From Macrostomum lignano (taxonomy: Eukaryota): a stretch of 64,000 nucleotides of DNA. This document shows, in pieces, positions 6,687 to 25,400 of this stretch (its first letter is position 1; each line of letters starts with the position of its first letter). The notes beneath the pieces were generated by a model. That model was not told the DNA's origin. It saw only the letters and a program-made list of their open reading frames with translations, and did not search any database. The stretch spans positions 186,001 through 250,000 of the forward strand of contig NIVC01000077.1 in the NCBI GenBank assembly GCA_002269645.1, in the 5' to 3' direction. Position numbers and translations under genes: made by a program.

Positions 6687-7369
6687 ACAACATTAAGTTC
6701 TACCGCACTACCTGATCGGGGGCTTTGTACCCCAGTACCAATAGTTTCGGGTTCGTAAATACCTAATGTTTCTATCGGCGGAGCTTTGGGTTTGTCGAGT
6801 CTCAACTCTTTTAATTCTATATCGGTAAAAGTTTCAACATCTAAAATTCTATTTCGATCTTTTAAATATTTTTCATATAATTCAACCGCGGTTGATAACT
6901 CGTGAATTGTTATCTCTCCGTCATCCAATATTTTTTGCACATATAAATATAACTGATTTTTATATTGCTTGGCAACATCTCTTAATGATTTATATTTTTC
7001 CTTTCGTTTTTTAAGATATAATTTAATTGCTAAAAGTATTGATAAGTTTCTGATTAATTCAAAACCTGATATTGAGCCAATTGAAATACCTAAAAATAAT
7101 TGAGATAAATTAAGAGTTGGAATAGATTGTAAAATACCTAAAATGATTACACATAACATCGATAAGCTTCCAAAACCAATATTGAAAAAATCCATATTTC
7201 TGATATGGTTTGAAATCCTTCTTACTTTTTTACTATATAAATCATAATCATAGTTAATACGATCAACATTACTTAACATGTGGCCTTTACGTTGGTCGTG
7301 CATAGCACGCGAACCTTCGGTTCGGTCAAAATGGTCACGTTCCCTTTTATCTGCTTCAGACACCGACAT
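6683..7369 (-). CDS. Polinton two-TM membrane protein (228 aa) with one in-frame double-hairpin module (7295-7324)
   Basis: Two adjacent hydrophobic helices followed by a K-rich helix and ILDDGEITIHEL, a layout recalled from conserved Maverick membrane ORFs. Confidence 0.7.
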   Translation of the reverse strand: MSVSEADKRERDHFDRTEGSRAMHDQRKGHMLSNVDRINYDYDLYSKKVRRISNHIRNMDFFNIGFGSLSMLCVIILGILQSIPTLNLSQLFLGISIGSISGFELIRNLSILLAIKLYLKKRKEKYKSLRDVAKQYKNQLYLYVQKILDDGEITIHELSTAVELYEKYLKDRNRILDVETFTDIELKELRLDKPKAPPIETLGIYEPETIGTGVQSPRSGSAVELNVV

Positions 7370-7685
7370 TCTCGTCTATTTTTAATAGCACCAAAATGAA
7401 TTCCCCGCGCTCTTTGGGGATTTGTCCTGAGCTCAATAGGTATTGTATTGGACTTATTCTTTCTTTTTTCTCCCATTTAAATCCAATTTTCCAAAACTCT
7501 TGAAGTATAATATGATTTTTTAATAATTTAATTAATTCTTGAAGTTTCTTATTATCCTGAACATTCACATTGCTAAATAAATATTTGGTATGAGATTTAA
7601 AAGTTTTTATAATCGGTTCTTGTTTAGGAATAGGAATAATAACATTATTATTCTGCCGCATCGATGGAGTTCTACTAAAAGCCAT
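7356..7685 (-). CDS. Polinton hypothetical protein (109 aa)
   Basis: ORF with TATAAAATG start. Confidence 0.6.
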   Translation of the reverse strand: MAFSRTPSMRQNNNVIIPIPKQEPIIKTFKSHTKYLFSNVNVQDNKKLQELIKLLKNHIILQEFWKIGFKWEKKERISPIQYLLSSGQIPKERGEFILVLLKIDENVGV

Positions 7686-7756
7686 TTTATATAGAAATAT
7701 TTAAGTTATCGAACCAAAGGTTCGCGACTTAGGCTTTAGCCTTAGGCGATCGCCCC

Positions 7757-9627
7757 TTAGGGTCGCAGCATTAGCTGATCTGTGTAGGTGGTTTTTCTAA
7801 ATAAGCGGTAGAAGGAAAAACATAGCCGTAGAAAAACGGCAGCGCCACGAATAAAATGTGCAGCATCCGATCCTCCGGTTCGAGCACCAAAACCCATAAG
7901 AGTTCCAGATTTATCTAAAGTTCCCCAATTCCCACTATCATAAGCAAAAACATTTTGCCCAATTAGAGTATAAGAATCGGCTGAAACATTGTATGAATTT
8001 AATCGATACCAAACCCTTTGATTAAGAATATTTATTTCAAACAGATGCCAATCACCATTATCAATATTTGCATAGTCTACCGTTTGATCCGCGTCAGTAT
8101 TAACATCCGCGCGGCTTGATCCATCTGATTTTTTAGAACTCCAAAGTAGGCCAAATTTATCATGCCACTCACTCGCAAAAACTATCAATCCAGCGTCTGT
8201 TGCTAAACCTGCCCCGCTTTCGGTTGTTGGTCGTTCGTGACAATATGCATAAAACCAAACGGCATCTGCACCACCTCCTGTAGCATTAGCAACTCTGAAA
8301 AAGAAAGACGCTGATATATTTTGAAAATGTGTGAAATTAAATTGTAATGCCCCACTGACTCCAACAGTTTCACGAGTAATTCTAGCACCATTTTGATAAT
8401 CGATATAAGAAGCGTCGCCAATTAAAGAACCAACTGGATATATATCTCCGGCGGTTGTTGGATTTTGATATCCAGTCCAATTGCAAATTACTGTCTCGAA
8501 TAATGCAGCATCAATCGCGGGAATATTATCCAATTTATTTTTATCACCTGCAGACATTCTACCGTTTGATGTTGGGGTTGCTACCTGATCTACGTACGCT
8601 CGCGGGGTTGCAGAAAGTATTTGATTCGGCCAATTAAGATCTTGAATTTCAACTCGGTGTTCAAATAATTGAATTAGACGAACCTCGATAGGTTGTGTAG
8701 CGGTGCCACCAGTTGGGAATAAAACACTATAATATTTCCAAAAATTAACCGTTAAATTAGTTAACGCAAATGAAGTTGCTTGAATTGGCGATCCCGACGT
8801 TCGTAATACCGTCCATGCATCGGTAGCAACATTTTTTGCGCGAACCGACCATCCCGATGGGATATCAATAGTTGCGCTGCCTGTAATTCTTAATTCATTT
8901 ATTCTTCGATTATAACCTAAAAATTCAAATTGAATTTCAATATTGGTTGTGGTTCCGGTATTTGGTGACCATTGTGTCGCAAGGCTTCCATCTCCAACTC
9001 GAAAAGCATCGTTGGTATTTTCAGATGCTGTAAGAACAACATCAGGATTTGAAGTATTTGATGTAAGCGGTGTGGCAAAAATATCGGCGTCTGTTACATT
9101 AGCTCGAGCGTTGACTTGCCCTAAATTGACCGAGTCTGTGTCCTCTGTTCCAAATAATAAATTTGTTAATTTAAAATTATTCATATTAATATTGCCAGTA
9201 CGACTACCAACCTGATTATCGACATAGTTCTTATCAACTACCGAGTTATTCGTTGTAATTGCAACATTTATAATTCGATTGTTGTTTCGGTTCCGGTTGC
9301 GGTGGTTTGAACATAACGCGAATCAGAATCATTTCGAGAATAAGAATCAGTTATATCTCTTTTTAAATTTAACCCAGTGTCAACCTCTGTTTTTGTATAT
9401 GAATCACTAATATCTCTTTTAAGATTTAATGAAGTGTCGATTTCAGTTTTGGTATAGGAATCTGCAACGTTTCTTTTTAAATTTAGTTTAGTATCAATTT
9501 CAGTTTTTTTATAACCTTCATCCTCATTAATATATCGGTTATCTCCGAATGTAACACTTATTCCACCAGATGTACCACCACCAGTACTTGTTGTTCCGTT
9601 CCATGAGGGTGTTCCAGAAAATATCAT
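7757..9627 (-). CDS. Fibre/receptor-binding protein (repeat shaft + discoidin-like + legume-lectin head), split by a frameshift near 9270-9310
   Basis: ORF 9268..9627 has YTKTEID-type repeats. The reading NNRIINV..VDKNYVDNQ..NMNNFKLTNL continues in the frame of ORF 7757..9184. Lectin motifs GGGADAVWF and MGFGARTGG..AHFI. Confidence 0.75.
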
Positions 9628-9637
9628 TTTTTACTGC

Positions 9638-10165
9638 CTATTTTATAGAGTCTAAAATCGCCCCGTAGGGTCGCGGACTTCGTCCGATCGTTCCGATGGA
9701 ACGCGTGCTTTGCACGATCGAACCGAAGGTTCGCATACTTTGTATGATATCTTTAAAGTCTTCGGGTCTTTCCTTAGAGTTATTAATTTTATATAAAAAA
9801 TACAACGCCGCTTGCCCGCAATAACTTTTATCAAAGGTTTGAAATTGTTCGTGATGATCTCCACATAAACGATTTTTAGTATGATTAAATTTGTCTTTTA
9901 TTTCCTGTAACGGAGGAAGCGCGTATGAATCAAAAAAATAAACAAGTTTGGGTTTGGAATAAACTGCCGACCAATGAACACCGTTTTCTTTTGTTGTTTC
10001 TATATTGACAATGTAAGATCCATATTGTGGTAAGTCTTTGATCTCATCTCGCATAACACATCTAAATGGTTTTATTTTTAGTTGCCGCGCCCAATTTGTT
10101 AATTCAATATTGCTTGTTGTGTCAGTTCCATATCTTTGTTTGAACAACTGCCAATTCAAAGTCAT
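9638..10165 (-). CDS. Adenain-like cysteine maturation protease
   Basis: Catalytic motifs GVHW, YFFDSY, QTFDKSYCG; the C-terminal 30 aa before LDSIK derive from three double-hairpin modules. Confidence 0.95.
   Translation of the reverse strand: MTLNWQLFKQRYGTDTTSNIELTNWARQLKIKPFRCVMRDEIKDLPQYGSYIVNIETTKENGVHWSAVYSKPKLVYFFDSYALPPLQEIKDKFNHTKNRLCGDHHEQFQTFDKSYCGQAALYFLYKINNSKERPEDFKDIIQSMRTFGSIVQSTRSIGTIGRSPRPYGAILDSIK
9657..9748. repeat. Three tandem 30-nt double-hairpin modules in the protease 3' end
   Basis: AT CGCCCC-GTA-GGGTCG CGGAC-TTC-GTCCG AT CGTTCC-GAT-GGAACG CGTGC-TTT-GCACG AT CGAACC-GAA-GGTTCG CATAC-TTT-GTATG AT. Confidence 0.93.
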
Positions 10166-10166
10166 T

Positions 10167-10340
10167 TTATGTTCCTGAAAAACTCTTGGTTTTGATTAGT
10201 TTCGTAGGTTTGGATTTTAACAGTTCCTTTCGGATTTTTTCTGCTTGAAGTTGTTTCAATTTTGTTAGTTCGATTTCATAATTATCCTTTGCATTTTGAA
10301 CTTTATCTGATTGTTTTTTTAAACTATTATTGTTACCCAT
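10167..10340 (-). CDS. Small basic protein with N-myristoylation consensus (57 aa; below ORF-track cutoff)
   Basis: MGNNNSLKKQ...KSFSGT*; TAAAAATG start; fills the gap between penton and protease exactly. Confidence 0.7.
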   Translation of the reverse strand: MGNNNSLKKQSDKVQNAKDNYEIELTKLKQLQAEKIRKELLKSKPTKLIKTKSFSGT

Positions 10341-10350
10341 TTTTACAATG

Positions 10351-11136
10351 TTAAACCTGTTTTATCCGTAAAATTATTGTTATTGACTGTCCACCAAAAC
10401 TTATTAATCTATCGCTTTCATCTACAATCCTAATATAAATTGATTGAACACTATATTGATTTAAAGGATAATATATTGGGGTTTGGGGTGCAACAATCAT
10501 TTTCTCTCCAATTGGAACAGCAAGAAATGGGATGGAATAAATAATTCCACGTTGAACCAAAACTCCGTTATCATCTGTTATATAACCGCCGTTTGATATG
10601 TCGGTTGTTATATTAATTGTATTAACTCCACCCTCAATATTTCCAACGGTATCGCCAGTGCTTGATGTGGTAACGATTCGGGAATTAAATCCGAGTATGG
10701 TTCTGAGTGAATTTGCAATTGTGAAATCAACCTGATATCCAGATTCTAGTGATAGCGTGAATCTGCCAGATGGTAAATCAACCCCTATAACAATCGCGCC
10801 TGCTACCCAATCGCCATTAGCTGTTAATTCTCCTTCTATATAAGCATTCAAATCGGTATAGGAATATGCTCCTGGGTTAACGCTAAATGTTGTCCAATTG
10901 GCTCCGGAATCTTTAGAATATCTAAATTGATTATTTGTTGCATTAATTAATTGAGGCATGTTAAAAACTGAAAATAGTATCAAACCTATTTGATAACTTA
11001 GGCTTTGATCGAGTTGTAACGGATCGCGCAATCGAATCAGTTGCTCACTTCTTGTCATTATAAACTGTAAGGTTGTACTAAATTTTGAATTAGTTCGATC
11101 TACCAATTGTTTTATAGTATCCAAATTTGTAGCCAT
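10351..11136 (-). CDS. Minor capsid protein (penton, single jelly-roll)
   Basis: N(Q)F.Y, PG.YS..DLN, P..PIYYPL and IRIVDE..RLI.F.G...TI.LRI motifs typical of Polinton pentons; position next to the ATPase. Confidence 0.88.
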   Translation of the reverse strand: MATNLDTIKQLVDRTNSKFSTTLQFIMTRSEQLIRLRDPLQLDQSLSYQIGLILFSVFNMPQLINATNNQFRYSKDSGANWTTFSVNPGAYSYTDLNAYIEGELTANGDWVAGAIVIGVDLPSGRFTLSLESGYQVDFTIANSLRTILGFNSRIVTTSSTGDTVGNIEGGVNTINITTDISNGGYITDDNGVLVQRGIIYSIPFLAVPIGEKMIVAPQTPIYYPLNQYSVQSIYIRIVDESDRLISFGGQSITIILRIKQV

Positions 11137-11154
11137 TTTTTATAGTGGATAAAA

Positions 11155-11919
11155 CTAAGTCTCTTCTTCCTCATTATCTTCTTTTATCAGATTTGTTAAG
11201 ATTCGATGTTTCCTTTCTAACCTGGGGTTGATATATATGTGTTTGTATTGGCTATCATCCCAAATTTTTTTACACATACTTTTAAATGGTTTGGTATCCA
11301 ACCCAGGATTAAATCTAGCGTGTATATTTTGTAAATCATATTTATCTAAATCAAACATTACACAACAGCTAGCATTCTTTTTTATAATTGATTCTAATTC
11401 TCTAAAAGATTGAGTAAGATAAAATGCTCCAATTCCATCTCCTCTACCACTAACAAAAATTTCCTTTTGCAATTCTTGATCGCCGTCATTAATACAATCA
11501 TCAAAAATAATTAGTGTTTTATCATGTTTTGGAATTTGATCATAGGATAATCGGGTTGATACTCTAACAGTTGGGGATCTCTCGGTGGTGTTTTCTGATA
11601 TTTGTGCCGTTGTTTTACATAAATCCTCAATGTCATCGAGTGTAAATCTTGGTTCATCATCGTCCTCATATTGCTCATATGCTCTTAACATTCTAAACAT
11701 AATATCTTTTTTTAATTTGTTTTTTAATCCATGTTTAAGAAATTCATAATATTTTATTTTAGGTTTGTTAGTATATATTAATAAATTATTATAGTCTAAC
11801 ATTCCATCTGTTGTTAATAAATCGTAAACAAAGTGTGTTTTTCCTTTACCTGATCCTCCGATTACTAAACAAAGAAAAGGATCATTTGGAAATATCTTAT
11901 TGTGTTTTGCTTTTACCAT
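11155..11919 (-). CDS. FtsK/A32-like genome packaging ATPase
   Basis: Walker A GGSGKGKT, Walker B LIIFDD, YLTQS motif. Confidence 0.95.
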   Translation of the reverse strand: MVKAKHNKIFPNDPFLCLVIGGSGKGKTHFVYDLLTTDGMLDYNNLLIYTNKPKIKYYEFLKHGLKNKLKKDIMFRMLRAYEQYEDDDEPRFTLDDIEDLCKTTAQISENTTERSPTVRVSTRLSYDQIPKHDKTLIIFDDCINDGDQELQKEIFVSGRGDGIGAFYLTQSFRELESIIKKNASCCVMFDLDKYDLQNIHARFNPGLDTKPFKSMCKKIWDDSQYKHIYINPRLERKHRILTNLIKEDNEEEET

Positions 11920-11967
11920 TTTTAAGGAAATAATTTATATAGGCGCGACGTGCTTTGCACTGCGACA

Positions 11968-13440
11968 CTAAAGTGGCGCGTCCTGAACTATGGTTCCGTC
12001 AGCCCGTGCAATTGCCATGTATTCCTCGAGAAACAAAACGTGGGCGTCAACCGCCTGATTTCCGGTTTTATTAATCTCTAACATATAATTAAGTCCAACA
12101 TTGGATACATTTTCTTTCTGTGCCGTTAGGTCAAAAACAGACACTGGATGAATGTTTAGAAACTCGGTGGGTGTGTACTGAGGAACCGCATACACTTCAT
12201 TTTTGACATAATCCTGATAATATTTTATAAAATCATTAACATCATTATTACCTATATTAAGATTAAGGGGTTCTTTAACCGGATAATACTGATCATCAAC
12301 CTGTAGGCGAATATTCTGAAGATTAAATGCGTTTATTGCTGAAGCTGCGGTATCGGTTGCCGTGGCTGCTTGGTCTGCTACTGCATCAGATTGAATCCAA
12401 TACAAATCACCGTTTGCACGTTTGCTAGTTCTATTTGTTATTTTAAACCAAACAAATATATATCTCACCCGACGTTTTGATGTTAATATTTGCCATTGGA
12501 ATGAATCCTGATTGTTATTAATGGTGCGCATAAAATGTCGACGATTCAAATAAAATATTTCTTGATCAACCATTAACTGATTATCAATATGTTTTAATAG
12601 CGGAGCCGTTACCTCAATGGTTGGTACGACTAATTGAATTGAAACTATTCTAAGTGCTATATCGGTTGAGGTTGAAGTTCCAAAAAGTATCCTACCCTGA
12701 TATCCACCAGATATTTGCAACTGTACCCCAAATTTTAATCCTTTCCATACCCGATTTGGTGAGAAGAACCCAAACAGTGGAAAGATTGAAAAGTCTTGCT
12801 CGTAAGCTGTTGCGTTGGTTAAAACCGCGACTGGGAATTTATTCTGACGATCTAGGAATCCCGTGTTTATGTTTTTAGGGTTGGTTAGAGTTGTTACAAC
12901 TGGAACTATGTTTGTATTAAGGTAATTAATAAGAGCTGCGGTATCTGCACCGGCTGCTGGTGCTACGTTAGGAAAATTTATTGCTCCACCATCTCCCTTA
13001 TCGGGCATCCATCCAACATTATCACCAACCTGTTTTGATAAATAAGTATAATTTAAATGTTTAAGAACTCCATTAATCTCTGCGGGGTTTGTTGATGTTT
13101 CAACCTCAGCTCCGTTAATTCTTAGTTGAGCTTGGGAAAAACATTTATAAAACCAATCGTTCTCGATAACAATACCAGCGCGGTCTGCTATATCACCAGC
13201 TCCAAGAGCCGTTCCGTCATTTCGTGTATATAACCATCTAACACGGAAAAACGCATTTTTCATATCCAGTATTGTATTAGTTGCACCAACATCAAAAGTT
13301 ACCGTTCCAGTAGTAAAATTGTTTGAATTATCGCTTGTTGGTAGGGTATAATTTAAATCTCTTGCCCTGACCTCATTAATATACTGGCGGTGCTTTTTGA
13401 AATAATACTTATCACTCCATCTGGTTTTTGTTTCAGCCAT
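11968..13440 (-). CDS. Major capsid protein (double jelly-roll)
   Basis: 490-aa beta-rich protein with FSQAQLRING.EVE, NL.NIRLQVD..YYP and YP(V)SVFDLTAQKE-type motifs; adjacent to ATPase and penton. Confidence 0.88.
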   Translation of the reverse strand: MAETKTRWSDKYYFKKHRQYINEVRARDLNYTLPTSDNSNNFTTGTVTFDVGATNTILDMKNAFFRVRWLYTRNDGTALGAGDIADRAGIVIENDWFYKCFSQAQLRINGAEVETSTNPAEINGVLKHLNYTYLSKQVGDNVGWMPDKGDGGAINFPNVAPAAGADTAALINYLNTNIVPVVTTLTNPKNINTGFLDRQNKFPVAVLTNATAYEQDFSIFPLFGFFSPNRVWKGLKFGVQLQISGGYQGRILFGTSTSTDIALRIVSIQLVVPTIEVTAPLLKHIDNQLMVDQEIFYLNRRHFMRTINNNQDSFQWQILTSKRRVRYIFVWFKITNRTSKRANGDLYWIQSDAVADQAATATDTAASAINAFNLQNIRLQVDDQYYPVKEPLNLNIGNNDVNDFIKYYQDYVKNEVYAVPQYTPTEFLNIHPVSVFDLTAQKENVSNVGLNYMLEINKTGNQAVDAHVLFLEEYMAIARADGTIVQDAPL

Positions 13441-13474
13441 TTTTTATAGTTAAAAAAGTTTTTTATGTTAAAAA

Positions 13475-14146
13475 ATGAGTCAATTTATGGATGTTGATGG
13501 AGAGTTAGAGATTTATAAAGATAAGCAAAGATATTCTGATTTTGTTAGAAATTTACAAAAAAGAAAGTTAGGAATACAATTAGCTGGCGAAAGATTTGCT
13601 GCTCCTTTTGTTAATCCGATTACGGAGAAAGTTAGTGAACTAGAAAAAACAGATAAAGACCTTCTAGAAAAAATTGCTAAGAATACCGAGCCAAAAGAGG
13701 ATGAAATTTTGGATGAGCCGCCTGCTTATGATGTTGATCAAGCATTATTGAGAGTTGCAGAAATTAGGGCTGCAGAAAGGGGTGGAGTTGAACAATATCC
13801 GAGAGCTGCACCACAAAGTATTGCTGTGCGAGATTTAGATAATAATAATTATCGAATTGGTGGAGTTGTTAAAAATCAGAATGAGCTATATAGAGAATTG
13901 GGTGGAGCATATAATATTATTATGAACCCGAGGGTAAAATTTAATCCTGATTTATATACTAGGGATGAATTAGTAAGTGCTAAAATTTTTTATGATGAGT
14001 TAGGAGAAAGAGCTGCTAAAAATACCAGTTTGTATAAAAGGATTGTTGATTCTATAAATAACAAACCGGTTGTTGGAGAAGGATTTAAAACTCCACGAAA
14101 ACTTGTTTTAGCTGCTGCGAAAGCTGCTGGACATACAGGAGTTTAA
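13475..14146 (+). CDS. Polinton PZ-like core protein (223 aa)
   Basis: C-terminal GEG-F...LVLAAAKAAGHTG resembling the PZ AGN/AGH motif. Confidence 0.55.
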   Translation: MSQFMDVDGELEIYKDKQRYSDFVRNLQKRKLGIQLAGERFAAPFVNPITEKVSELEKTDKDLLEKIAKNTEPKEDEILDEPPAYDVDQALLRVAEIRAAERGGVEQYPRAAPQSIAVRDLDNNNYRIGGVVKNQNELYRELGGAYNIIMNPRVKFNPDLYTRDELVSAKIFYDELGERAAKNTSLYKRIVDSINNKPVVGEGFKTPRKLVLAAAKAAGHTGV

Positions 14147-14173
14147 TTAATTGTTAAATTTATTTTTTATAAA

Positions 14174-14689
14174 ATGGAAAATACGATAAAAAATTGTCTT
14201 TGTAAACCTATTTATGATAAGGCTGGTTCTGACAGAATACTAAATAAGATATTTCAAAATGAATTAATAATTGCAAACCGTATTAAAACAATTCAAATGA
14301 GACTTGGATATCTTTATGAATTATTAGCTATTGAACATTTTGGTTTTGAAAAAATAAACAAAATTGATTTAATTCATACCGAAAGAAAAATTGCGTTAGA
14401 ATTAAAATCTTCTGATAATACAGATAATTTATCAAGTAGATTTAGAAATATTCAAAAGTTATTAGAATTTAAATATGTTAATCCCGAATTTGATTTATAT
14501 TATATTTGCATTAATAATACTACTAAAAACCCCGTACAAAAGGTATTTGATAATGGAGTTACCTTTTTAACTGGGGAATTTGCTTTAAATTTTTTATATG
14601 GTGATCAATATTTGGAAATTATTAAAATGATAGAAACGTGTTTTTCAAAGATTAAAAATGAGCAACCGAACGAAGTTCGCGAACCGTAG
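14174..14689 (+). CDS. Free-standing PD-(D/E)xK restriction-like endonuclease (171 aa)
   Basis: GYLYE helix, IDL, ALELKSSDNTDN pattern as in type II REase/PD-(D/E)xK folds; no methyltransferase in the visible element. Confidence 0.7.
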   Translation: MENTIKNCLCKPIYDKAGSDRILNKIFQNELIIANRIKTIQMRLGYLYELLAIEHFGFEKINKIDLIHTERKIALELKSSDNTDNLSSRFRNIQKLLEFKYVNPEFDLYYICINNTTKNPVQKVFDNGVTFLTGEFALNFLYGDQYLEIIKMIETCFSKIKNEQPNEVREP

Positions 14690-16264
14690 GTTCGACCAAT
14701 TAGTATTTGAAGGAGGATTTTTAGACTTACAAAAAGGATTAACAAGCTTACCGAGTATTTTTACTACTGGAAGGTATACAAATGAATTACACCTGCCGTC
14801 GTATAATTTCACAGGTTACCCCGTGGCCTGAGTGAGGAAGTCAATGTCCTTGCTAGTCACTATTTGTGGCGACATCTTCAAATTGCGTGAAACCCGTCAT
14901 ACAGCTTCAAGTACCACTTCAATTGAGAAATCTTTTGAAGGAACAGAGGTAACTCCTCTTCCCAACGGTAACAAGCTTGAAGACATGGTGGCAATGCGCA
15001 GCCAAGCTCCTAAGTCGGTCGATATGGAGAAGGTTCAGAGAGCAGACGGAGATGGGCGGTAATTTAACCGCTTAAGGTGTGCTCCAGCCTCTTTCGAAAG
15101 ATTGAGGGTAAACTACCCGGCACTAAGTTAGATTTGAGATTAAATCCTGATGACACTCCAAAAGCTGATTCAATTCCCATTAACGGTATTGATTGGTTAG
15201 CATATTATCATGACTTAGCATACAGAGATGCTGATAAGAACTCACCCGAGGAAGCATTAAGATTAAAACATGAAGCCGATAGAAAAATGATTCAAGGATT
15301 AGATAACTTACAAGGATTATCGGTAAGCCAAAGATTAACTCGGTGGATGGTTAAAAAGATTCTGCAATCTAAAGTTAAATTTGGTTTGGGAATTAATTAC
15401 AATCAACATGGAAATAATTGTGTTGAGTGTTTATTATTAAGTGGCAGTGGGTTAAGTTCTGATGAGGCAAAGATTCTTCATAAAGAATATCGAAAACCTA
15501 AATTTTATAGAAAAATCATGAACTTCAAAAAGAATGAAATTTGGTATGCTGATTTAATGTCGATGCCGAGCGACAGAGGATATAAATATATTTTAACCAT
15601 ATTAGATGGTTTTACTAGATACGCGTGGGCTGTTCCTTTAAAATCCAAAAAAGGAGAGGAGGTTGCTGCTGCTTTTAGAAGTCTTGGAGAAAAAAGCGAA
15701 CGGTTGTGTGTTGATGAGGGAAAAGAATTTTACAATCCTCATATGTATAAATTATATCATTTTGAAAAAGGAAAAGAAAGGATGAAGGACGCGAATGGGG
15801 AGTATATTAATAAAATTTATTCTATTTATGGAGAAAGTAAAAACGCATTAATAGAAAGATTTAATCGAACTTTGGGGAAGAAATTGTGGTTTCAGTTTAG
15901 TCTTAATGGAAACCAAAAGTGGGTAAAAATATTACCAGACGTCGTGAAAGATTATAATAATTCATATCATTCAGCAATAAAGATGACTCCTCAACAAGCT
16001 TATAACAATCCTGAAAACGTTAAAGTTACTTTTGGAAAATTTGAAAAAAATAAAAAGAAATCTTTTAAGGTTGGTGATTCTGTTTATATCTATAAATGGA
16101 AAAATAAGTTTGAAAAGGGAAGAAAAGGATATTGGAAAATTAGTGAGAAATTTACTATCAGTAAAGTTTTAAATACAAATCCTACAACCTATATAATTGC
16201 TGATAAGGATGGTGAAGAAATATTAGGTTCGTTTTATGAGAATCAACTAATATCAGCGAACTAA
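14658..16264 (+). CDS. PLA2-integrase fusion (exon 1 14658-14816, exon 2 15116-16264; 435 aa spliced)
   Basis: Joining gives ELHLPSYNFTG|PGTKL (PLA2 Ca loop), then HDLAY and HEAD (PLA2 catalytic), then rve DDE motifs WYADL, LCVDEGKEF, IERFNRTL. TAAAAATG start at 14658. Confidence 0.9.
14817..15115 (+). ncRNA. Group I self-splicing intron (IC1-like fold), 299 nt, no internal ORF
   Basis: P1 with U.G (exon CAGGU/GCCUG 14826-30); P3 CAUCUUC/GGAGAUG; P AAAUUGCGUGAAA; Q AAUGCGCAGCC; P5abc with A-rich bulge and GAAA L5b; 11-nt receptor CCUAAG/UAUGG; P7 GAGCA/UGCUC; P8; P9 with GAAA loop; P9.0 AG/CU. Confidence 0.95.
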
Positions 16265-16274
16265 GTTCGAACAA

Positions 16275-16442
16275 TTACTTGAGACAACATGGTAGTAAAT
16301 TTTTTATAACAAACAAAAACAATATTATTACTATTATTGTTACTAATATAATTATTGAAATTTGTTCAACAGATATCAAACTTAAATTTTCATTAAGTTC
16401 ATTAATCGGCACATTTCCGATGTAGGAGTAATTTACCTTCAT
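16275..16442 (-). CDS. Small single-pass membrane protein (55 aa; below ORF-track cutoff)
   Basis: MKVNYSY...ISIIILVTIIVIILFLFVIKNLLPCCLK*; TAAAAAATG start. Confidence 0.55.
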   Translation of the reverse strand: MKVNYSYIGNVPINELNENLSLISVEQISIIILVTIIVIILFLFVIKNLLPCCLK

Positions 16443-16501
16443 TTTTTATATATATTTTTCATAATAAATGTTGTTTCTGTTATAGAATAATAGTTCATTT
16501 T

Positions 16502-16816
16502 TTACATAAAAATTTCAATTTCATTCTCAGAATCACTAGTTTCATATGAGCTATTTGTTGAGTTGGAATCGTCTGAACGAACCTCCCAATCATCCGAATT
16601 TAAATAATCTCCAAGTTGAAATATTAACTCACCCTCTTGTTCTAAATCATACATCTCATCCAACTCTAATGGATAAAGTTTTGGGTCGTGCTTGTCGTCA
16701 TACTTTAAATAAACTTCATCAATTATTCCATTCAAAATATGTTGTTTTATTATCTCTGCATTTTTAGCAACAGTCTCAAAAGTATCACTAACAGAAAAGG
16801 TGTAAACTCGGGTCAT
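16502..16816 (-). CDS. Acidic hypothetical protein (104 aa)
   Basis: ORF with TAAAAATG start adjacent to the terminal repeat. Confidence 0.6.
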   Translation of the reverse strand: MTRVYTFSVSDTFETVAKNAEIIKQHILNGIIDEVYLKYDDKHDPKLYPLELDEMYDLEQEGELIFQLGDYLNSDDWEVRSDDSNSTNSSYETSDSENEIEIFM

Positions 16817-16859
16817 TTTTAGTAACAGAAAAAGACCCTTCGCGCCTGCGGCGCGTGCG

Positions 16860-17211
16860 AGGGGTTATAGAGATTTGGATGTGTTAGAAGTGTTGGGGAG
16901 TGTTGGAAGAATTGGGATGTGTAGTAGTAGGTAAAAAGACGAGTACAGATCAGCCCTTTTTAAATGGCCGTTTATAAGGTTCCAGAGGGGGGACACGAGG
17001 GGGCTAATTCAAAGAGTTGGGGATGGGTTATATTGATTTGTGGTATTAAGGGGTGTTGTGGGTGATTAGGTGTGTTATGGGGTGTTATGGGTGTGTTATG
17101 GGTGTTTAGATGTGTTTTTTTATTTCCCCCCCCCCGTGTCCCCCCTCTAGACCCTTAAAACGGCTGTTAAAAAAGCGTGCTGGGTCTGTACTCGTCTTTT
17201 TACCTACTACT
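16860..17211. repeat. Polinton right terminal region (TIR; inner boundary uncertain) with internal inverted copy of the terminus
   Basis: Non-coding GT-rich short repeats; AGTAGTAGGTAAAAAGACGAGTACAGA at 16923 is the exact reverse complement of 17185-17211. Confidence 0.85.
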
Positions 17212-19022
17212 AAGAACAAATATTGCTTAATTATAATCCAGCCTTTGTGAAAAAGAAAATTTAAGGTCCAATCAGGCCAGACCTAGTCTTCAAACAATTT
17301 TTTTATCTAAATACGATTAGAAAATAATCCTCCTAAAACTGAAATGCGAAATTACACCCAACATTTTCTCTCATGAAGCATGTAGACTGTGTGGAGCGAG
17401 AAATGGTTCCGATATCCTACACTACTTGACCGAATGTCCACAAACTGAAAAGATCAGAAAAAAATACTTCTGTCAGTACCTCTTAAATGACAAGCAAGTA
17501 CACAAGTTAGGATATGCTACAAATGAAAAAAGAGTCAGAAAAGAGCTCACTGGTGTAGCTAAAATATATGAAGTCATGAATAGCTTAAACAGTTATGCAA
17601 ACTGAAACAGACATATCAGCAGTGTAATAAATCCGCTTTTCATTTGTTTATTCATTTACTGTCTTTTTAATTTCCTATTTAATTAGCATTTAATTAGTAT
17701 TTAATTAGTTTCCTATCTAATACCTATTTAAATCGTCGTTATTCGTTAAACGTAAAGTTCTTTCGAAGTATGTTCATGTTCGTTTTTCACGCTTTGAAAT
17801 ATTGCGCGCTTGCAAAATACTACATCTTTTTACAAAAAACGCTCTTTCAAATACCTTAATAATTTTACAAATATCGTAACTCGCATCGTAACTCGTGAAA
17901 AAAATTTAACCTTTTGAACTTAATCGTAATTAAACAACTAATGCTAAAATATCTTAAATACACAGAAATATACTGGCCAAACAGGCTTCTTGCCTGAGCC
18001 AACTTACTACTACTGAAAAAAATGATGCTTATAGTCAGAAGAACAACAGAACAACAGGCTCGCTCCTTAGGCTTACATTGATTTGCGATGGTCTGATAAT
18101 GCACTTTACAAATTTACACATAAAAGTAAGAGCTGGCTCGCTATTACATATACTTGTAGTAGATTATATTCGTTCCGGTGACAAGCAAAGGTTAGGCCTA
18201 TGTCGGACGTCGGTGCAGATCGCTTCATCACCGACTGTTACCGACCCCAAGCCCAAGCCCCAAGGCCTTGCACTTGCACATGGCAGGCAGGCAAGTATTA
18301 AGGACCACGCCAAACTGTTAGGGGCCTATACTACTTAAGTGGTCCTTGGTCTGGTTACTGCTTCCAGACAAATGGAAAAGCAATGACAAAATTGTTTTCT
18401 GTGGTCTCCCCATGCATTTTAGGCCTGAGCCTGAGGTTCCTAGTCATTTCGTCATCTGGGTGTCTGGGGTGCTCACCTCAACTTGCTGCAGCTTAATAGT
18501 TAATAAAAACAAAAAAAATGGTTTACACTAACTCGAATCTCACACAGATTAATTGGTTGATGAAGAAGCATCCAGCATAACTAAATATTTGGTCACTTCG
18601 TCATATTATTTTTCAAGCTACTTTGCTTCTGGTCACTTTGTCATCCGATATGACGAAATGGAATATGACGATCTGACCAGTGACCAGTGACCGAGCCTGA
18701 GGGCTAGGCCTAAGCTAAAGCCTCACTTTAAAAAAATTGTTTGAAAGGTCTTGCCATGCCTATTTTATTTTTGTATATTACTATTACTAAGTTAAGTATG
18801 CTTATTTATTAATATTGGCATACTTAATGAATAAATACTAAGAGGCTAATTAGTATTTATAATTAGGTCTAGGCCCCCTAGTATTAGATTTATTTTTATA
18901 AGTAGATTTAAAGGAAGGCCAAGGCCACAGAAATAAAAAGGTTAAAATCAATTTTATTCTTAGGTAGGCCTCTACTATAGAAACTGGTTAGGCCTAAGAC
19001 ATGTAAAAGTCATATCAAAAAT

Positions 19023-19135
19023 GGGCTATCCTGCATTTTCGTTCGTTAAATTATTTCCGGAATTATTTCGCCCTCTATTCAAGGGTGGTGGGGGGTGGGT
19101 GTTGGAATTAAACGAACGAAAATGCAGGATAGCCC
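19023..19135. mobile_element. 113-bp MITE
   Basis: Perfect 25-bp TIR GGGCTATCCTGCATTTTCGTTCGTT; AAAAAT on both flanks (possible 6-bp TSD). Confidence 0.8.
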
Positions 19136-19259
19136 AAAAATGTATTAAAATTATTTGAATCATCTCAACTTGAATTGCAACTCTAATAGGCTTTACTATA
19201 TTACTATAATTTAGATTTTATATTATTGTATATTAGGTCTAGTATGTTAAGGTTAATTG

Positions 19260-20261
19260 TGAGGTGGGGGTGGAGAAGAATTTTCTTGGAAACTCTCGGT
19301 TTCAAAAATTTGCTGACACCAGTGAGGTGGGGCGGATTCCTCGTTTGAATTGCCGCCTGCGTTGTAGAAGCACGAATAAAGCCGGAAAAATGCACAAATT
19401 GATGCGTTGATTCTTCTCCTAGGTTACTCCGTCTGCCGGGTCCTCAATTCCGGGGGGAGGGTAGTCGTAATCGCAGTCGAGCGGTCTAGTAGCGGCCCGG
19501 GTCGTTCAAATTAGGTCCTCAGACACCGTAAACTCGTAGTTCGTCGAATATGCTCGTTTGGTTACTAACAGTAGTAAAGTAGCGCTGCCACCACCGTAAA
19601 TGTCGTTTTACGGAACGTTTAGGGTCTCAGAGCTTTCTTTGAGATGAGACTGATTGGTTATTTTACGCCCCGCGGGCAAATGACTCAATAGAAACTAAAG
19701 GCTTCGATTCTGAACAACTGAATGAATATTAAATGTTGGCGAACTGTATTAATTATGGTTGCGTTATTATTATTGTTATCATTACTTATTGTTACTACGC
19801 GAGATGATCAGAGACAGGAACAGAAGAAAAGGCGAAATTAAGAACTAAAACTAACTAAACTAAAACAAACAGTACAACACACACACACTAAAACTAACAA
19901 ACAAAAGAAAAAACTAAAAAACAAAACTAAAGGAAAAATGACTCCAGAGAAGACTCAAATAAATAACATTTTGGCGGGAAGGATCCCAGGGGTGGGACGA
20001 AGGATGGGACAAGGGAAGGGACAACGAAAGGAAAAAGGAAAACCCGGCCGCTGGAAACATTAAAACAACAGGGGCCAAGGGAGGGAACAGAAAAGGGAAC
20101 AGACGAGGGAGCAAGGGCGGGAACAACCGGGGGAACAAACCAGGGGACAAAAATTGAAAAAAAATGACGTCAATCCGTCCGTGGAACTGGGTGGAATGTC
20201 CCGCCGGTGTTCGCGCTAGAGGCCTGCCGTCGTTCTCCCAGTGGTAGACCGGCCTACCACA
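19260..20261 (-). repeat. 3' LTR (1002 bp)
   Basis: Direct repeat of 28403-29405; only one substitution and one homopolymer indel noticed by eye. Confidence 0.95.
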
Positions 20262-20313
20262 GGCGCGGGGGCGCCGGGGCGAACGGCAGCAGACAGACGA
20301 ACTCCCGGACGTC

Positions 20314-20880
20314 TCAGTGGCGGCGGTCCTGCTTCGCCGGCCGGCCTCGGCGAGCAGGGGCGTTCGGATCTGACGGCGGCGAGCTTGCGACGCGTGCCTG
20401 CTGGCTCAGCTGGAGATTGAGCAGCTGCAGGCGCTGCCCGTCAAAAAAGAGCCGCTCCGGGCGCCTCTCGATGGCGACCTCCCAGAAGTGGCGAACTTCG
20501 GGCAGCCATCCGCTCTGGAGGTGGCCCGCCTCCCAGTACGCCAGAACAATGAATAAGGCGAGGGCAGGCCGAGGCCGTCCGCCTTCGCGGAAGCAGGTAT
20601 CAGCGCGCCGCAGCGTTTCATCGAGAAGCTCCCGCGTGGTCGTGGGCGGCATCTCGCGGCAGAGTGTCCGCCATGGGGCGTCCACTTGAACGCGGCCCTT
20701 GTCGGCCGCCTGGTGGTAGGCCTCGTTGAGCGCGCGGCGAAGCTGTTCACGGGCCGGGGCCGCACCGCTCGGGGCATAAGCCAAGGCTCGCAAGGTGTCT
20801 GACTCGCTCGACGATAGCCAGGGCGCTTGCAAAAGGAGGTCCGGCGAGGCACCAGCGCTGTCGGTCCCGTTGTTTGCCAT
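20314..20880 (-). CDS. Extra sense ORF3 of the Gypsy element (188 aa, not env-like)
   Basis: GC-rich ORF between IN and the 3' LTR, helical composition, no signal peptide or TM. Confidence 0.55.
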   Translation of the reverse strand: MANNGTDSAGASPDLLLQAPWLSSSESDTLRALAYAPSGAAPAREQLRRALNEAYHQAADKGRVQVDAPWRTLCREMPPTTTRELLDETLRRADTCFREGGRPRPALALFIVLAYWEAGHLQSGWLPEVRHFWEVAIERRPERLFFDGQRLQLLNLQLSQQARVASSPPSDPNAPARRGRPAKQDRRH

Positions 20881-21804
20881 ATTCGAAGCGGCGGAGCGTG
20901 ATGCGACAGTCCGAAATATTCAGTCGGCAGGTCGGATCAACAGAATTGGAGAAAATAAAATTGAAGATGGCTCCTTAAATAGGGCGCAAAATATTCCAAC
21001 TGGTGGAATTCCAAACCAACCAGAGGAAATAAAATTCAACCACTGGAATTGAGCCATCACCCCCGTGCACTCTAAGGTGGCACACAGAGTTGGGGTGGGC
21101 GCATGAATCAAGGAGTCATAAAATAGATAACCGCGCGGCAGGGGTCCAAAATCAGAATGAATGAATGGGGGCGCCTCACACGGCTCACAAACAGGTTGGC
21201 GGTTAGAGAGAGGGGGGGCTGAACAATCGCATAAACAGTAGTTTAGAAAATAGTAAGAACATAGGTAGTTCCTAAAAATTAGAATAGCAGATAGATACAG
21301 GCATAGTGACCGAGTTAGAATTTGGGATCTCCATAAGGAGTTACACAAAACGGCAAAAGGCACTGGGAAGGGGCTGGACAGGCGCCCTTACAAATTTTCC
21401 CAGGCTCGGCTCGGTCAGAACAAAGAAAATGGGGGCCGTTCACCTCAGATGCCCTCCGCTGAGGACAAGGCCTAGAGCCAGGGTGGCTAGACCTGAGCGG
21501 GGCAAACGACTGGGACACCAGAGCAACATTGGCTTGCAAAATTAAAAGATACCTTCAGCCACAAGCAAGGACTGCAAGGTTACAACTGAAATAAACTTCG
21601 CAAAGTTAATGACACGCAATTGAGCAAATTAATGAATCGCATGCGGATAAATAATTGTCGCGTAGGTGCTGGCTTTTCCCATCAAGCCTAAGGCTAAATA
21701 TCAGAGCGCAGAAGTGCGGGTCGCGTTGAATAAATATGAGCACCAATTGAGCAAGAGCACAATGTACAAAGGCTTTTGACCGGAAAGCGTAAGGAGCAGA
21801 AATT

Positions 21805-22260
21805 GGAAAAATTAGTTGCTTTTGCCCTCAAGCATAAGGAAAGTACAGAAAATTAGTTGCCTTTGCCCTCAAGCATAAGGAAAGTACATTGAGAAACACT
21901 GCTCCTGCCATCAAGCAAAAGGAAACGGACAGAAAAATTAGTTGCTTTTATCCCTCAAGCATAAGGAAAGTACAGAAAATTAGTTGCTTTTGCCCTCAAG
22001 CATAAGGAAAGTACAGAAAATAGTTGCTTTTGCCCTCAAGCATAAGGAAAGTACAGAAATTAATTGCTTTTGCCCTCAAGCATAAGGAAAGTACAGAAAT
22101 GAGTTGCTTTTATCCCTCAAGCATAAGGAAAGTACAGAAAATTAGTTGCAAAACTAACGCTTGCTTTTATCCCGAAAGCATAAGGAGAGCAAAATTACAG
22201 CAAATTTGACGCCTGCTTTTATCCCGAAAGCATAAGGAGAACAAAATTTGAAGGAATATT
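21805..22260. repeat. ~40-bp tandem repeat in the Gypsy pol-ORF3 spacer
   Basis: Repeated AAATTAGTTGCTTTTGCCCTCAAGCATAAGGAAAGTACAG units. Confidence 0.85.
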
Positions 22261-22406
22261 GAAAGTTGCTTTCAGCACAGAAAAGGTGCAGAGAAAGCTT
22301 ACAGCGAAATTTAATTCAGAACGCGTTCACAAACTTAACTACTCGTAGTAATGCGCAACGGTAATTTAACTATTAGGCGCAATAATATATCGCTGGTAAT
22401 TACCTT

Positions 22407-25400
22407 TTAGAGCTCCATCTCCATGCCGATGTCAGGCAAGTCCGGGTCGCCTTCGGCAAGCACCTCCGGGTGGCGCAAGCTGGGCTCGAACAGCTGACTG
22501 CCTCGCAGGTCAGGCTGAACTGTGGCCGGCTGCTCTGGCGCGGGCTGATCGGCTGGGTCGACTTCGCTGTCTTCGCTCGACTCATAGGGCAGCATTGGCC
22601 GCTCTGTCTGGCGCGGCGGCTCCTGTGGTCGATCTGCCATCATCTGCGGCACCTTGATGATGTTGTTACGATGAACTAGCATTTCAGCTGGGCGTCCACG
22701 GCGGGCTGTCGCTGGCTTGATCCAATACGCCACTTCTCCGACTTTCCTGGCGACCTTGTACATACTCTTGTACGGCCGGTGGAACTTGGGCAGCTCTCCC
22801 AGTTCGAGCTTCGGGTTGGCCAGGCAGACCAAGTCTCCGGGCTGCAGCTCCACGGGCTTTGGCCGGTTCTCGTAGTACTCCTCTCGGCGCTGGATCTCGG
22901 TTCTCAGTCGCTGTCGCACAATTCGTTCTGTCTCGGCCAGTCTGCGCTGATGTTTGGCAATGTACTCCGGGAGGTCAGCTGATACATCCAGTCGGTCTAG
23001 GGTGTTATCGATCGGATACCGGTAGGGCACTCCGTAGATGACATAATGCGGCGAGAACCCGGTTGTACGATTGACTGCTGATCTTAGAGCTGTTAAAGCA
23101 GCTGGCAACATCTTGTCCCATTGCTGATGGTCTTCTAGGAGACAGGTGAGCACCTTCTTGATGTTCTTATTGCACGACTCAGCTTGTCCATTGGCCCATG
23201 GCGAATACGGCGGCGTCGTGGTCTGCCGGATGCCGTAAACTTCGCAGAAGTGCCGGAACTCGTGTCCTGTGAACTGTTTCCCTTGATCGGAGTGAATCCA
23301 TGCCGGGATTCCGGTGATCGGAAACACTTGTTCCTGCAGGAGCGTTATAATGGTCTTGGCCCGCTGATTCTTCATGGCGAAAGCGAAGGGGTATTTCGAC
23401 GTAGTGTCGACGTAGGTCAAGATGCACTTGTTTCCTCGGTCCGTCGGGTCTCCAGTGGGGCCCAGGATGTCGATCGCACATCGCCCATAGATTTCACAGA
23501 CCGGAAACGATTGTACATGCGCCGGAATTCGTCGCCGTCCTTTGCTCTGAGTGCAGGTCTGGCAGGAAGCGACATAGTCGGACACTGCCTTGGCCAGGGC
23601 AGGTCGCCAGAACCTTTCGCGCACCTTCGCGATGGTGAGGTCTCGGCCCATGTGTCCGCAGTAGGGTGAACCGTGGAGGTCGGCGAACACCGTGGCGTCG
23701 AGGCTCTTCGGCAGGACGATCCGCGCCGTTTCCTCCTCGCCAAGATCGTCGAAATGAATTACCAGTAGTCCATCATCTCGGACTTCGAGCTGCTCGTAGA
23801 ACGCTAGTAAGTTTCGTTCGTCTCGTGTCATATTCAAACGCTGATTCAGCGGCGGCTTCGGCTGTCGGCTTTCCAAAAGGTTGATCATCATGGCGATGGC
23901 AGAGTCAGCACGCTGGTGAGTCTGGAGCTCCTCACGTGTGACTGGCCTCGGGATGTGATCAGTTAGATTCAATGATGAACGTCGATTAGTCAAATTAGTC
24001 GGCGCGGCTTCGGCTGTGGCGGCATGGTTCGGGGTCTGGAGCTCCCTCCGCACGATCGCTACTCTGGCCGGTTGCCGGGTCGTTGATGTGCCCGAAGGTC
24101 GATCCTCGTCGGTAGCTTCGGCGTCACTATTGTCGGATTCAGATCGGTCAGCAGTTGATGATGAGTCAGCAGAGCTGTCCGCGTCGCTGCTGAATCTCAC
24201 CTTCTTCTCAAACTTCGGGCAGCGAGCGAGTTGGCAGCTGTCCTCTCTGGCTGCGCTGTGGTCGCTGTCCGTGCCGTCTCCAGCTAGTAGTCGGCGGCTC
24301 CTTGACGGGCAACATGTCGTGCTACTAAAACCGGTAGGCGACCTCTGCGAGTCATCGTAACGGCTGGCTGATGGCCTCGGTTTCGTCGCCGGCGGGTGCA
24401 GCTCTGTCAGCGGCTTGCTGTCGGCTGTAGGTGTTGCTGGCGGCGTAGCCTCGCCGTTGGACTCCTTCGGCTTAGTCGGCGGTTTCCGTCGCTTACGGCG
24501 GGTCGACGGCTTCTTGCTCGGTGGAGGACTAGGGTGGCTGCTGTCGTGGACCTTCGGCGCCGCTGCGCCAGTTATCGCGGCTGGCTGCTTACTTTGGTCC
24601 TCATCAGCTGCCTCGCGCTGAGCCTCCTCCAAGCATTCGGCGTCGTCCTCCGGCCGTCTCGAGAGACCGTCGGCGTTTTGATGCTGACTCGATTTGCGAT
24701 GCTGGATCTCGAACTCAAATTCACTTAGCCGCTGTAGCCATCGTCCAAAGATGCCTACTTGTTGAGTTCGCCGGAGAATCCAGGTCAACGCTGCATGGTC
24801 GGTTCGACAAATGAACTTCTTGGCCAGCAGGTAGAAGCGGAAGTGTCGCATGCCATCTACGACTGCCAAGAGTTCTTGCTTAGTAATTGGATATCGGGCT
24901 TCAGCCGGTTTAAGTCGTCGGGAGAAATAGCCGATTGGGCGCTCGATCCCGTCAGCTTGGCGTTGGCTCAGGCAGGCTCCGATTCTGGTCGCAGAAGCAT
25001 CCGTGTCCAGGATAAACATTACTTCCGGATCCTCGCTGAACTGCGGATACGCGAGCACTGATGTCGAAGTCATGGCCGCTTTGAGCTGATCGAACGCGTC
25101 TTGCTGGGCTTTTCCCCATAGACAATTGAAATTTCTAATCTTCTTTTCCTTGATCAAGTCGTGGAGCGGAGCTGCAAGTTCTGCATAGCCAGGTACAAAT
25201 TTTGCATAGTAAGCGCACGTGCAGACAAAACTTTTAAGTTGTCGAGCTGTTCTTGGTCTTGGCCAGGTCTGAATAGCCTCGATCTTCGCCGGATCGGTCT
25301 TGATGCCGTCCTTAGTAACTACATGTCCCAGATAGTTTAGACTTGCCCGAAATAAATGGCACTTCCTGCCTTTGAACTTTAAGTTGGCCTCTTGAATTCG

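Follow-up and report, generated by a model that had tools for sequence, protein, structure and literature searches.

A group I intron in the PLA2-integrase gene of a flatworm Polinton lies where the joined codons would form a GGNCC site, the inferred target of an adjacent predicted nuclease

The window analysed here is a 64,000-nt stretch of the Macrostomum lignano genome (GenBank assembly GCA_002269645.1, contig NIVC01000077.1, positions 186,001 to 250,000 of the forward strand), and all coordinates refer to its first base. Its first 17.3 kb (1-17264) is the visible part of a Polinton/Maverick-class element, which has about 33% GC and densely packed open reading frames, and whose left end runs off the window. 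The ORF at 1470-5444 (+) is the protein-primed PolB (pPolB), which matched PF03175 (DNA_pol_B_2) at 53.1 bits (cutoff 25.8) and PF02945 at 30.6 bits when its middle third was scanned alone. Only PF02945 was seen with the whole ORF, and a PDB sequence search with the whole ORF gave no hit. An A32-type genome-packaging ATPase is encoded at 11155-11919 (-) (PF04665, Pox_A32, 30.1 bits, cutoff 22.8). Together with the rve integrase described below, these genes provide the hallmarks of a Polinton. No Pfam, PHROG or NCBIfam hit to a double jelly-roll major capsid protein, penton protein or adenain-like protease was found, and a 475-aa capsid candidate had one relative only and a structure model of pLDDT 27, too poor to use. 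PHROGs, NCBIfam and PADLOC searches added nothing for the unknown ORFs. A nested inverted repeat at 16922-17212, with 28-nt perfect outer arms enclosing G-rich short repeats, is a candidate right terminus of the element. A search for terminal inverted repeats between the left part and the right end found none inside the window. Further to the right, at 19260-29344 (-), lies a Ty3/gypsy LTR retroelement with gag and pol domains and a 942-bp LTR pair that is 99.8% identical. Its proteins are 95-99% identical to those of M. lignano, so the host is an animal.

The gene of interest encodes a parvovirus-type PLA2 domain fused to an rve integrase and is split into two exons. Exon 1 (14658-14816, +) has 53 codons and ends ...YNFTG, and it aligns with the N-terminal region of uninterrupted relatives. 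Exon 2 (15116-16264, +) begins PGT... and holds the rest of the PLA2 domain (about 15116-15330, with the H-D...Y...D motif), the integrase core (about 15527-16000) and a C-terminal region shared with relatives. The exons were searched separately. The PLA2 domain matched PF08398 at 17.3 bits and is annotated as such in relatives, whereas the integrase core matched PF00665 at 31.0 bits, just under the cutoff of 32.6. The integrase assignment is supported by matches to retroviral integrases in the PDB (E = 7e-7), by PF00665 in nearly all relatives, and by end-to-end alignment of exon 2 with relatives.

The 299-nt insert between the exons (14817-15115, +) has 47.5% GC, against 27.7% and 31.3% in the exon flanks. 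A covariance-model scan and a comparison with intron-less homologues had been named beforehand as tests of the intron, and both came out in its favour. The Rfam model RF00028 (Intron_gpI) matched 14807-15106 on the + strand over model positions 1-253 of 253, at 62.9 bits against a gathering score of 50 (E = 1.2e-15, or still about 1e-13 when scaled to the whole window). The hit appeared only when about 550 nt were searched. Scans of 64 kb, 20.5 kb and 4 kb containing the same sequence reported nothing because of the speed filters. These scans therefore do not establish that the element lacks other introns, and similar introns may be widely overlooked by standard Rfam scans of long sequences. 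Comparison with the Rfam consensus showed that all core helices pair. P1 (14812-14830) pairs five exon bases and three intron bases with the internal guide sequence (8/8), with U14816.G14826 at the 5' splice site, followed by P2 (8/8), P2.1 (5/5) and P3 (7/7). The P4-P6 domain (14884-15034) comprises P4 (6/6), P5 (7/7), P5a (8/8), P5b (8/8) with a GAAA loop, P5c (5/5) and P6 (6/6) carrying the CCUAAG/UAUGG receptor, and was also recovered by the minimum-free-energy fold. The remainder (15038-15114) contains P7 (6/6) with bulged A15039 and the G15040-C15084 pair, the 3' strand of P3, P8 (5/5), J8/7, P9.0 (2/2) and P9 (6/8) with a GAAA loop. P10 forms 4 of 6 pairs. However, the minimum-free-energy z-score alone is weak (-1.89), and only one copy underlies this assignment, without support from covariation. 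The only ORF inside the intron (76 aa) had no family hit.

The junction is also defined by the proteins. Fifty-two uninterrupted relatives read straight through it with no extra residues, sharing G(-1) in 100% and P(+1) in 92% of cases, so that removing exactly 14817-15115 restores the conserved ...G|PGT... motif. Five relatives (designated P0003, P0036, P0007, P0011 and P0019) have gene calls that begin 1-13 residues before this exact point. In P0003 and P0036, 12 of 13 of those residues equal the in-frame reading of the intron tail in the window, whereas exon 2 is only 59% identical, suggesting that these relatives share the intron site. P9.0 and the protein junction both place 15115 as the last intron base (the omega position), which is A rather than the guanosine found in nearly all group I introns, although the guanosine-binding pair in P7 looks canonical. 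Exon ligation in this copy may therefore be poor or absent. We considered alternative 3' splice sites ending in G, but the only in-frame one downstream of P9 would add three residues that no relative has.

The observation reported in the earlier note, a group I intron at 14817-15115 that exactly splits the PLA2 motif of a Polinton gene, is thus confirmed. Its interpretation is partly supported. The note was right that the insert is a group I intron, that it interrupts a protein-coding gene, that the element is a Polinton in an animal chromosome, and that making the integrase depends on removing the intron. By contrast, its term "self-splicing" goes beyond the sequence evidence, given the non-canonical terminal base, and its assignment to class IC1 fits the P5abc, receptor and P2.1 architecture but rests on architecture alone. 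Its statement that no such intron had been reported in Polintons needs qualification, because RF00028 introns were reported in 2025 in polinton-like viruses of Paulinella, Rhodomonas and Desmodesmus (PMC12220804), though not in animals and not in this gene. The note also missed the non-canonical terminal base, the neighboring nuclease gene and the site avoidance described next.

The ORF at 14174-14689 (+), whose 3' end overlaps the start of exon 1 by 32 nt, encodes a 171-aa protein predicted to be an Eco47II-like nuclease of the PD-(D/E)XK restriction fold. The protein itself matched PF09553 at only 21.2 bits, below the cutoff of 25.9, but 55 of 60 aligned relatives matched (best E = 7e-15), 174 representative relatives were collected, and D65, E76 and K78 are nearly invariant. 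The AlphaFold model has a pLDDT of 93.6, and a Foldseek search with it revealed EcoO109I (TM 0.67) and AvaII as the top matches. A profile search of the PDB with the nuclease alignment gave no sequence match, and a viral fold library gave only generic PD-(D/E)XK matches. An Eco47II homologue cuts unmethylated GGNCC (PMC10305163), and the specificity of the present nuclease is inferred from its family. No methyltransferase domain was found in any ORF of the visible part of the element, although one in the part beyond the window cannot be excluded.

We then counted GGNCC sites and found none in the element until position 17265, against 18.8 ± 4.5 expected (0 of 300 dinucleotide shuffles reached zero). 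GGNCC was the only one of 136 comparable words with a zero count. Under synonymous-codon shuffles that keep the proteins fixed, 5.96 ± 2.26 sites were expected (0 of 500 reached zero). The host flanks are near normal (34 vs 39, 20 vs 31, 11 vs 17 and 4 vs 2). Some other palindromes are also under-represented (CANTG, CATG and CCNGG), with CCNGG depleted more mildly than GGNCC (7 vs 19). At the protein level, no Gly-Pro dipeptide occurs in 5235 residues of the element (9.5 expected), while Pro-Gly occurs 5 times. The pattern extends to relatives: 36 uninterrupted relatives, with the junction motif masked, have 6 Gly-Pro but 71 Pro-Gly (29 expected for each), and 150 nuclease relatives have 5 Gly-Pro but 30 Pro-Gly (29 expected for each). 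In contrast, 120 gypsy controls show no depletion (594 and 481 against 605 expected). Three relatives have Ala in place of the junction Pro and no Gly-Pro anywhere. However, most relatives keep an uninterrupted Gly-Pro, so the site is tolerated in many elements, although it was not visible whether these carry the nuclease.

Based on these results, we propose the following explanation, which we hold with moderate confidence. In the transcript, the ribozyme would pair the end of exon 1 (CAGGU) with its guide sequence and be opened after U14816 by a guanosine cofactor, and joining to 15116 would recreate the Gly-Pro-Gly calcium-loop motif of the PLA2 domain, followed by the integrase. The element seems to protect itself from its own nuclease by containing no GGNCC at all. 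Because a Gly-Pro pair is always encoded GGN-CCN, the conserved Gly-Pro of the PLA2 loop is the one site that synonymous changes cannot remove. The intron lies between GGT and CC, so that it abolishes the site in DNA, and splicing would restore the codons in RNA. In this view, the same nuclease would cut intron-less alleles at that point and act as a free-standing homing endonuclease for an intron that encodes none, i.e., collaborative homing. The analysis itself establishes the identity of the intron, its exact junction, the fold and family of the nuclease as predicted from profiles and models, the site avoidance and the animal host. The specificity and cleavage activity of the nuclease, the causal link to the position of the intron, homing, and splicing of this particular copy are inferences.

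Several other explanations were weighed. The intron might be a genuine relic in a dead copy that can no longer complete splicing, so that the PLA2-integrase is not made, the locus is a silent fossil, and the position reflects only the usual preference of mobile introns for conserved sites (PMC2814812). The terminal A is consistent with this, and in three of the five intron-type relatives the residue at the boundary is Met, an internal ATG or a called start codon, all of which end in G and so appear to keep the canonical base. Furthermore, an exact-sequence look-up found none of ten element proteins in a collection of 15 billion, giving no sign of many active copies. However, all helices are intact, no internal stops occur in the pPolB, ATPase, nuclease or either exon, ligation without the terminal G has a natural precedent in the ND5-717 intron (PMC6545197), the one such case we found, and a relic explains neither the absence of GGNCC nor the avoidance of Gly-Pro. 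We regard this as unlikely, although it is the strongest of the rivals. It is less likely that GGNCC is avoided owing to restriction pressure from another source, such as a co-infecting giant virus or another host, with a nuclease of different specificity or role and an intron placed in GGN|CC by coincidence. Giant viruses carry restriction-modification systems (PMC12220804), and other palindromes are under-represented too. Yet only GGNCC is absent outright, a member of the family that cuts GGNCC is encoded in the element itself and abuts the intron-bearing gene, and the nuclease relatives avoid Gly-Pro sixfold but not Pro-Gly.

We also consider it improbable that the element belongs to a protist or food organism in the culture and was joined to flatworm DNA by misassembly. 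In favor of this, GC content jumps from 33% to 45-60%, the left end and a target-site duplication are not visible in the window, the published intron-bearing polinton-like viruses are all from protists, and the nearest protein relatives are metagenome sequences. Against it, the element lies on the same sequence as, and within 2.1 kb of, the M. lignano retroelement, a PLA2-integrase relative (P0071) lies in a coral chromosome, and Polintons with an HNH-bearing pPolB are known in animals (PMC10748475). Removal of the insert by the spliceosome is very unlikely. Although a GT lies at 14815-14816 and 18 in-frame GT...AG pairs exist around the insert, none recreates the conserved G|PGT junction, the nearest would delete six conserved residues including the Gly-Pro-Gly loop, and the insert scores as a complete group I ribozyme.

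More tentatively, the ribozyme may be kept as a DNA-level site breaker. A virus-like element armed with a restriction-type nuclease and no methyltransferase would contain none of the nuclease's sites, and where an essential Gly-Pro makes the site unavoidable, a self-removing intron would split it and the RNA would put it back. The intron would then be a functional part of a restriction-avoidance strategy as well as a passenger spread by collaborative homing, and would be the first group I intron found in a protein-coding gene in an animal nuclear genome. [quoted passage not shown] If this idea holds, it connects ribozyme introns, restriction-site avoidance, and Polinton and virophage biology, areas usually treated apart, and extends collaborative homing from phages to eukaryotic virus-like elements.

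The closest parallel is collaborative homing by the free-standing endonuclease F-CphI and the psbA group I intron of cyanophage S-PM2 (PMC6083498, citing Zeng, Bonocora and Shub 2009). There too an endonuclease gene lies next to an intron-containing gene and the intron encodes no endonuclease. The phage intron interrupts what would be the nuclease's target, as is inferred here, which protects its own genome while intron-less alleles remain targets. In our case the proposed partner has a predicted type II restriction fold with an inferred 5-bp target rather than a long homing site, so that the whole element would have had to purge that site, and the carrier is a eukaryotic Polinton in an animal genome rather than a phage. 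The RF00028 introns of polinton-like viruses integrated in protist nuclear genomes (Paulinella micropora 53, Rhodomonas lacustris 44, Desmodesmus armatus 2; PMC12220804) were detected with the same Rfam model and are of similar size (309-376 nt). A "short protein" of roughly 50 residues is reported at the intron, about the size of exon 1 here. The interrupted gene was left unannotated and lies upstream of the capsid gene, and no link to a nuclease or to site avoidance was drawn. Ribozyme introns also occur in protein-coding genes of eukaryotic dsDNA viruses of a different class, in different genes. Some of these carry their own endonuclease ORFs, and none is in an animal genome.

Nuclear IC1 introns of the Tetrahymena type (PMC3679873) share the P4-P6 domain with P5abc, the GAAA loop and 11-nt receptor, P2.1 and the G-C guanosine-binding pair in P7, but are found only in rRNA genes of eukaryotic microbes. 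The present intron is shorter, lacks P9.1/P9.2, for which there is no room between P9 and the 3' end, sits in a protein-coding gene and ends in a non-canonical base. The ND5-717 mitochondrial intron of hexacorals (PMC6545197) is a group I intron in an animal that lacks the terminal guanosine, yet its exons are ligated in vivo. It is, however, giant and vertically inherited, and its processing is unconventional (back-splicing). Finally, a parvovirus-type PLA2 domain is also encoded by animal Polinton-like viruses, in the PLA2X genes of adintoviruses and Polintons (PMC8502044; PMC11296320). In those genes it is fused to a pX-like virion core domain, whereas here, and in several hundred relatives, it is fused to the integrase.

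The stretch at 14817-15115, which the earlier note had described as a group I intron with a complete catalytic core, was examined first by composition and by a covariance model. It is 299 nt long with a GC content of 47.5%, compared with 27.7% and 31.3% in the exon flanks. When searched as a 551-nt piece (14700-15250), it was matched by the Rfam Intron_gpI model (RF00028) at 14807-15106 on the + strand over the whole model, with a score of 62.9 bits against a gathering score of 50 and an E-value of 1.2e-15. However, the same intron was not reported when the input was 64 kb, 20.5 kb or even 4 kb, although all of these contain it. The pre-filters lose it, probably because of the long P2/P2.1 and P5abc insertions, and a negative long-range scan therefore means little here. 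Similar introns may be missed routinely in genome-scale scans.

We rebuilt the helices by coordinate. P1 has 8 of 8 pairs, with U14816.G14826 at the 5' splice site, followed by P2 (8/8), P2.1 (5/5), P3 (7/7), P4 (6/6), P5 (7/7), P5a (8/8), P5b (8/8, closed by GAAA), P5c (5/5) and P6 (6/6), which carries the CCUAAG/UAUGG receptor. P7 has 6 of 6 pairs with the bulged A15039 and a G-C pair, P8 has 5/5, P9.0 has 2/2, P9 has 6/8 and is closed by GAAA, and P10 has 4/6. The observation in the earlier note is thus real and its anatomy is correct. The plain minimum-free-energy z-score was only -1.89, so the case rests on the covariance model and on the junction, not on thermodynamics.

Exon 1 runs from the ATG at 14658 to 14816 and ends in YNFTG, whereas exon 2 runs from 15116 to 16264 and begins with PGT. 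The two exons were searched separately. Exon 2 has 446 relatives, many of which carry both PF00665 (rve) and PF08398 (parvovirus-type PLA2), and one of which lies in a coral chromosome. In the alignment, the uninterrupted relatives read straight through G-PGT with no extra residues. Over 52 such relatives, G(-1) is shared by 100%, P(+1) by 92% and L(+5) by 98%, and only removal of exactly these 299 nt restores the motif. Five relatives (P0003, P0036, P0007, P0011 and P0019) have gene calls that begin 1-13 residues before this same point. In P0003 and P0036, 12 of those 13 residues equal the in-frame reading of the intron tail in the window, whereas the exon is only 59% identical. Relatives therefore carry a homologous intron at the same site, and it is better conserved than the gene around it.

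The earlier note missed one flaw. Both P9.0 and the protein junction make 15115 the last intron base, and this base is A rather than the guanosine with which nearly all group I introns end, although the guanosine-binding pair in P7 looks canonical. With the donor fixed at U14816, the only in-frame G downstream of P9 would add three residues that no relative has. In three of the five intron-type relatives the boundary residue is Met, an internal ATG or a called start codon, and all of these end in G. A natural group I intron that lacks the terminal G and is still ligated in vivo does exist, namely ND5-717 of hexacoral mitochondria (PMC6545197). Splicing of this copy is therefore only inferred. 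The interpretation of the earlier note is partly supported, but its term self-splicing is not supported or is overstated. We saw no stops or frameshifts in the recognisable genes of the visible part, the count being zero breaks in the polymerase, the ATPase, the nuclease and both exons.

The 1324-aa ORF at 1470-5444 contains PF03175 (protein-primed PolB, 53.1 bits) and an HNH/endonuclease VII domain N-terminal of the polymerase domain. This arrangement recalls the HNH-bearing pPolB2 said to link nematode and oomycete Polintons (PMC10748475). The polymerase domain is invisible to Pfam when the whole ORF is scanned. ORF 11155-11919 is an A32-type ATPase, and exon 2 holds the integrase. This is the Polinton/Maverick gene set, although capsid and protease genes were not identified in the visible part, and the left end of the element is off the window. 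The direct repeats at 19260-20200 and 28403-29344 are the 942-bp LTRs, 99.8% identical, of a complete, young Ty3/gypsy retroelement with open gag and pol ORFs (19260-29344). Its polyprotein is 95-99% identical to Macrostomum lignano proteins, and the host is therefore a flatworm.

ORF 14174-14689, which overlaps the start of exon 1, has 174 representative relatives. Of 60 aligned members, 55 hit PF09553 (RE_Eco47II), with a best E-value of 7e-15, and residues D65, E76 and K78 are nearly invariant. The structural model is confident (pLDDT 93.6), and its best structural matches are the type II enzymes EcoO109I (TM 0.67) and AvaII. An Eco47II homologue cuts unmethylated GGNCC (PMC10305163). The element has no GGNCC at all. 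Dinucleotide shuffles expect 18.8 +/- 4.5, and 0 of 300 shuffles reached zero; GGNCC is the only one of 136 comparable words with a zero count. Shuffling synonymous codons with the proteins held fixed still expects 5.96 +/- 2.26, and 0 of 500 shuffles reached zero. The 5235 residues contain no Gly-Pro, against 9.5 expected, but five Pro-Gly. The host flanks have near-normal GGNCC densities. The first site, at 17265, lies just beyond a nested inverted repeat at 16922-17212 (28-nt perfect outer arms and 32-nt inner arms around G-rich GTGTTATGGG-like repeats), which directly follows the last AT-rich ORF and may be the terminus of the element or a small inserted element.

Gly-Pro is always encoded GGN-CCN, so the conserved Gly-Pro of the PLA2 loop is the one site that cannot be removed by synonymous change, and the intron lies between GGT and CC. 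Across the family, 36 uninterrupted relatives with the junction motif masked have 6 Gly-Pro and 71 Pro-Gly, with 29 expected for each, and 150 nuclease relatives have 5 Gly-Pro and 30 Pro-Gly, again with 29 expected for each. In contrast, 120 gypsy controls have 594 Gly-Pro and 481 Pro-Gly, with 605 expected for each. Three PLA2-integrase relatives (P0010, P0016 and P0017) have Ala-Gln in place of Pro-Gly after the junction Gly and have no Gly-Pro anywhere. This replacement removes the forced GGNCC without an intron and looks like a second solution to the same constraint. No methyltransferase domain was found in the visible part of the element.

Based on these results, we propose that the nuclease would cut GGNCC and that the element would protect itself by having no such site. 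In this view, the intron would remove the one forced site from the DNA, and splicing would restore the codons in the RNA. Intron-less alleles would remain cuttable, so that the nuclease could drive the intron into them. This would be collaborative homing, as described for F-CphI and the psbA intron of cyanophage S-PM2 (PMC6083498). The parts and the statistics were established by the analysis, whereas the specificity of the nuclease, its causal link to the position of the intron and the activity of this copy are inferred.

Other explanations were considered. The intron might be a relic in a dead copy, which is possible but in our view unlikely, and it is less likely still that the site avoidance has another cause. 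Misassembly appears improbable. Removal by the spliceosome is very unlikely, since none of 18 in-frame GT...AG pairs restores the motif.

Group I introns in polinton-like viruses were reported in 2025, in protists only and without a gene assignment or a nuclease link (PMC12220804). Nuclear group I introns are otherwise confined to rRNA genes of microbes (PMC3679873), and large algal viruses have them in protein-coding genes (PMC7019647). What is new here is the animal host, the PLA2-integrase target, and the pairing with a restriction-fold nuclease and total site avoidance.

A family of GC-rich double-hairpin repeats of about 30 nt was found inside the AT-rich element, at 4680-4710, 4710-4740, 5522-5552, 7294-7324 and 14664-14694 on the + strand and at 9657-9696 and 9716-9747 in reverse. 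All lie within open reading frames, and one spans the end of the nuclease ORF and the first codons of exon 1. They look like in-frame palindromic mini-insertions. Three tandem 57-nt repeats at 9329-9513, inside ORF 9268-9627 of the element, give a repeated 19-residue unit in a small protein of unknown function. In the spacer just left of the LTR, a 31-nt inverted repeat at 19021-19137 forms a hairpin with a far sub-threshold Rfam microRNA-precursor match (38 bits against a cutoff of 230), which is probably meaningless. The window also holds host gene fragments, namely two Nrap exons separated by an intron (37437-38012 and 39374-40192) and a leishmanolysin-like (peptidase M8) ORF (55982-56812). 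Satellites are present as well: a 31-nt satellite of about 254 copies with a constant GC skew of -0.5 (41998-49959), a 150-nt satellite that runs off the window (59531-64000), and a 48-nt array of 31 copies that generates spurious long ORFs on both strands (35750-37235).
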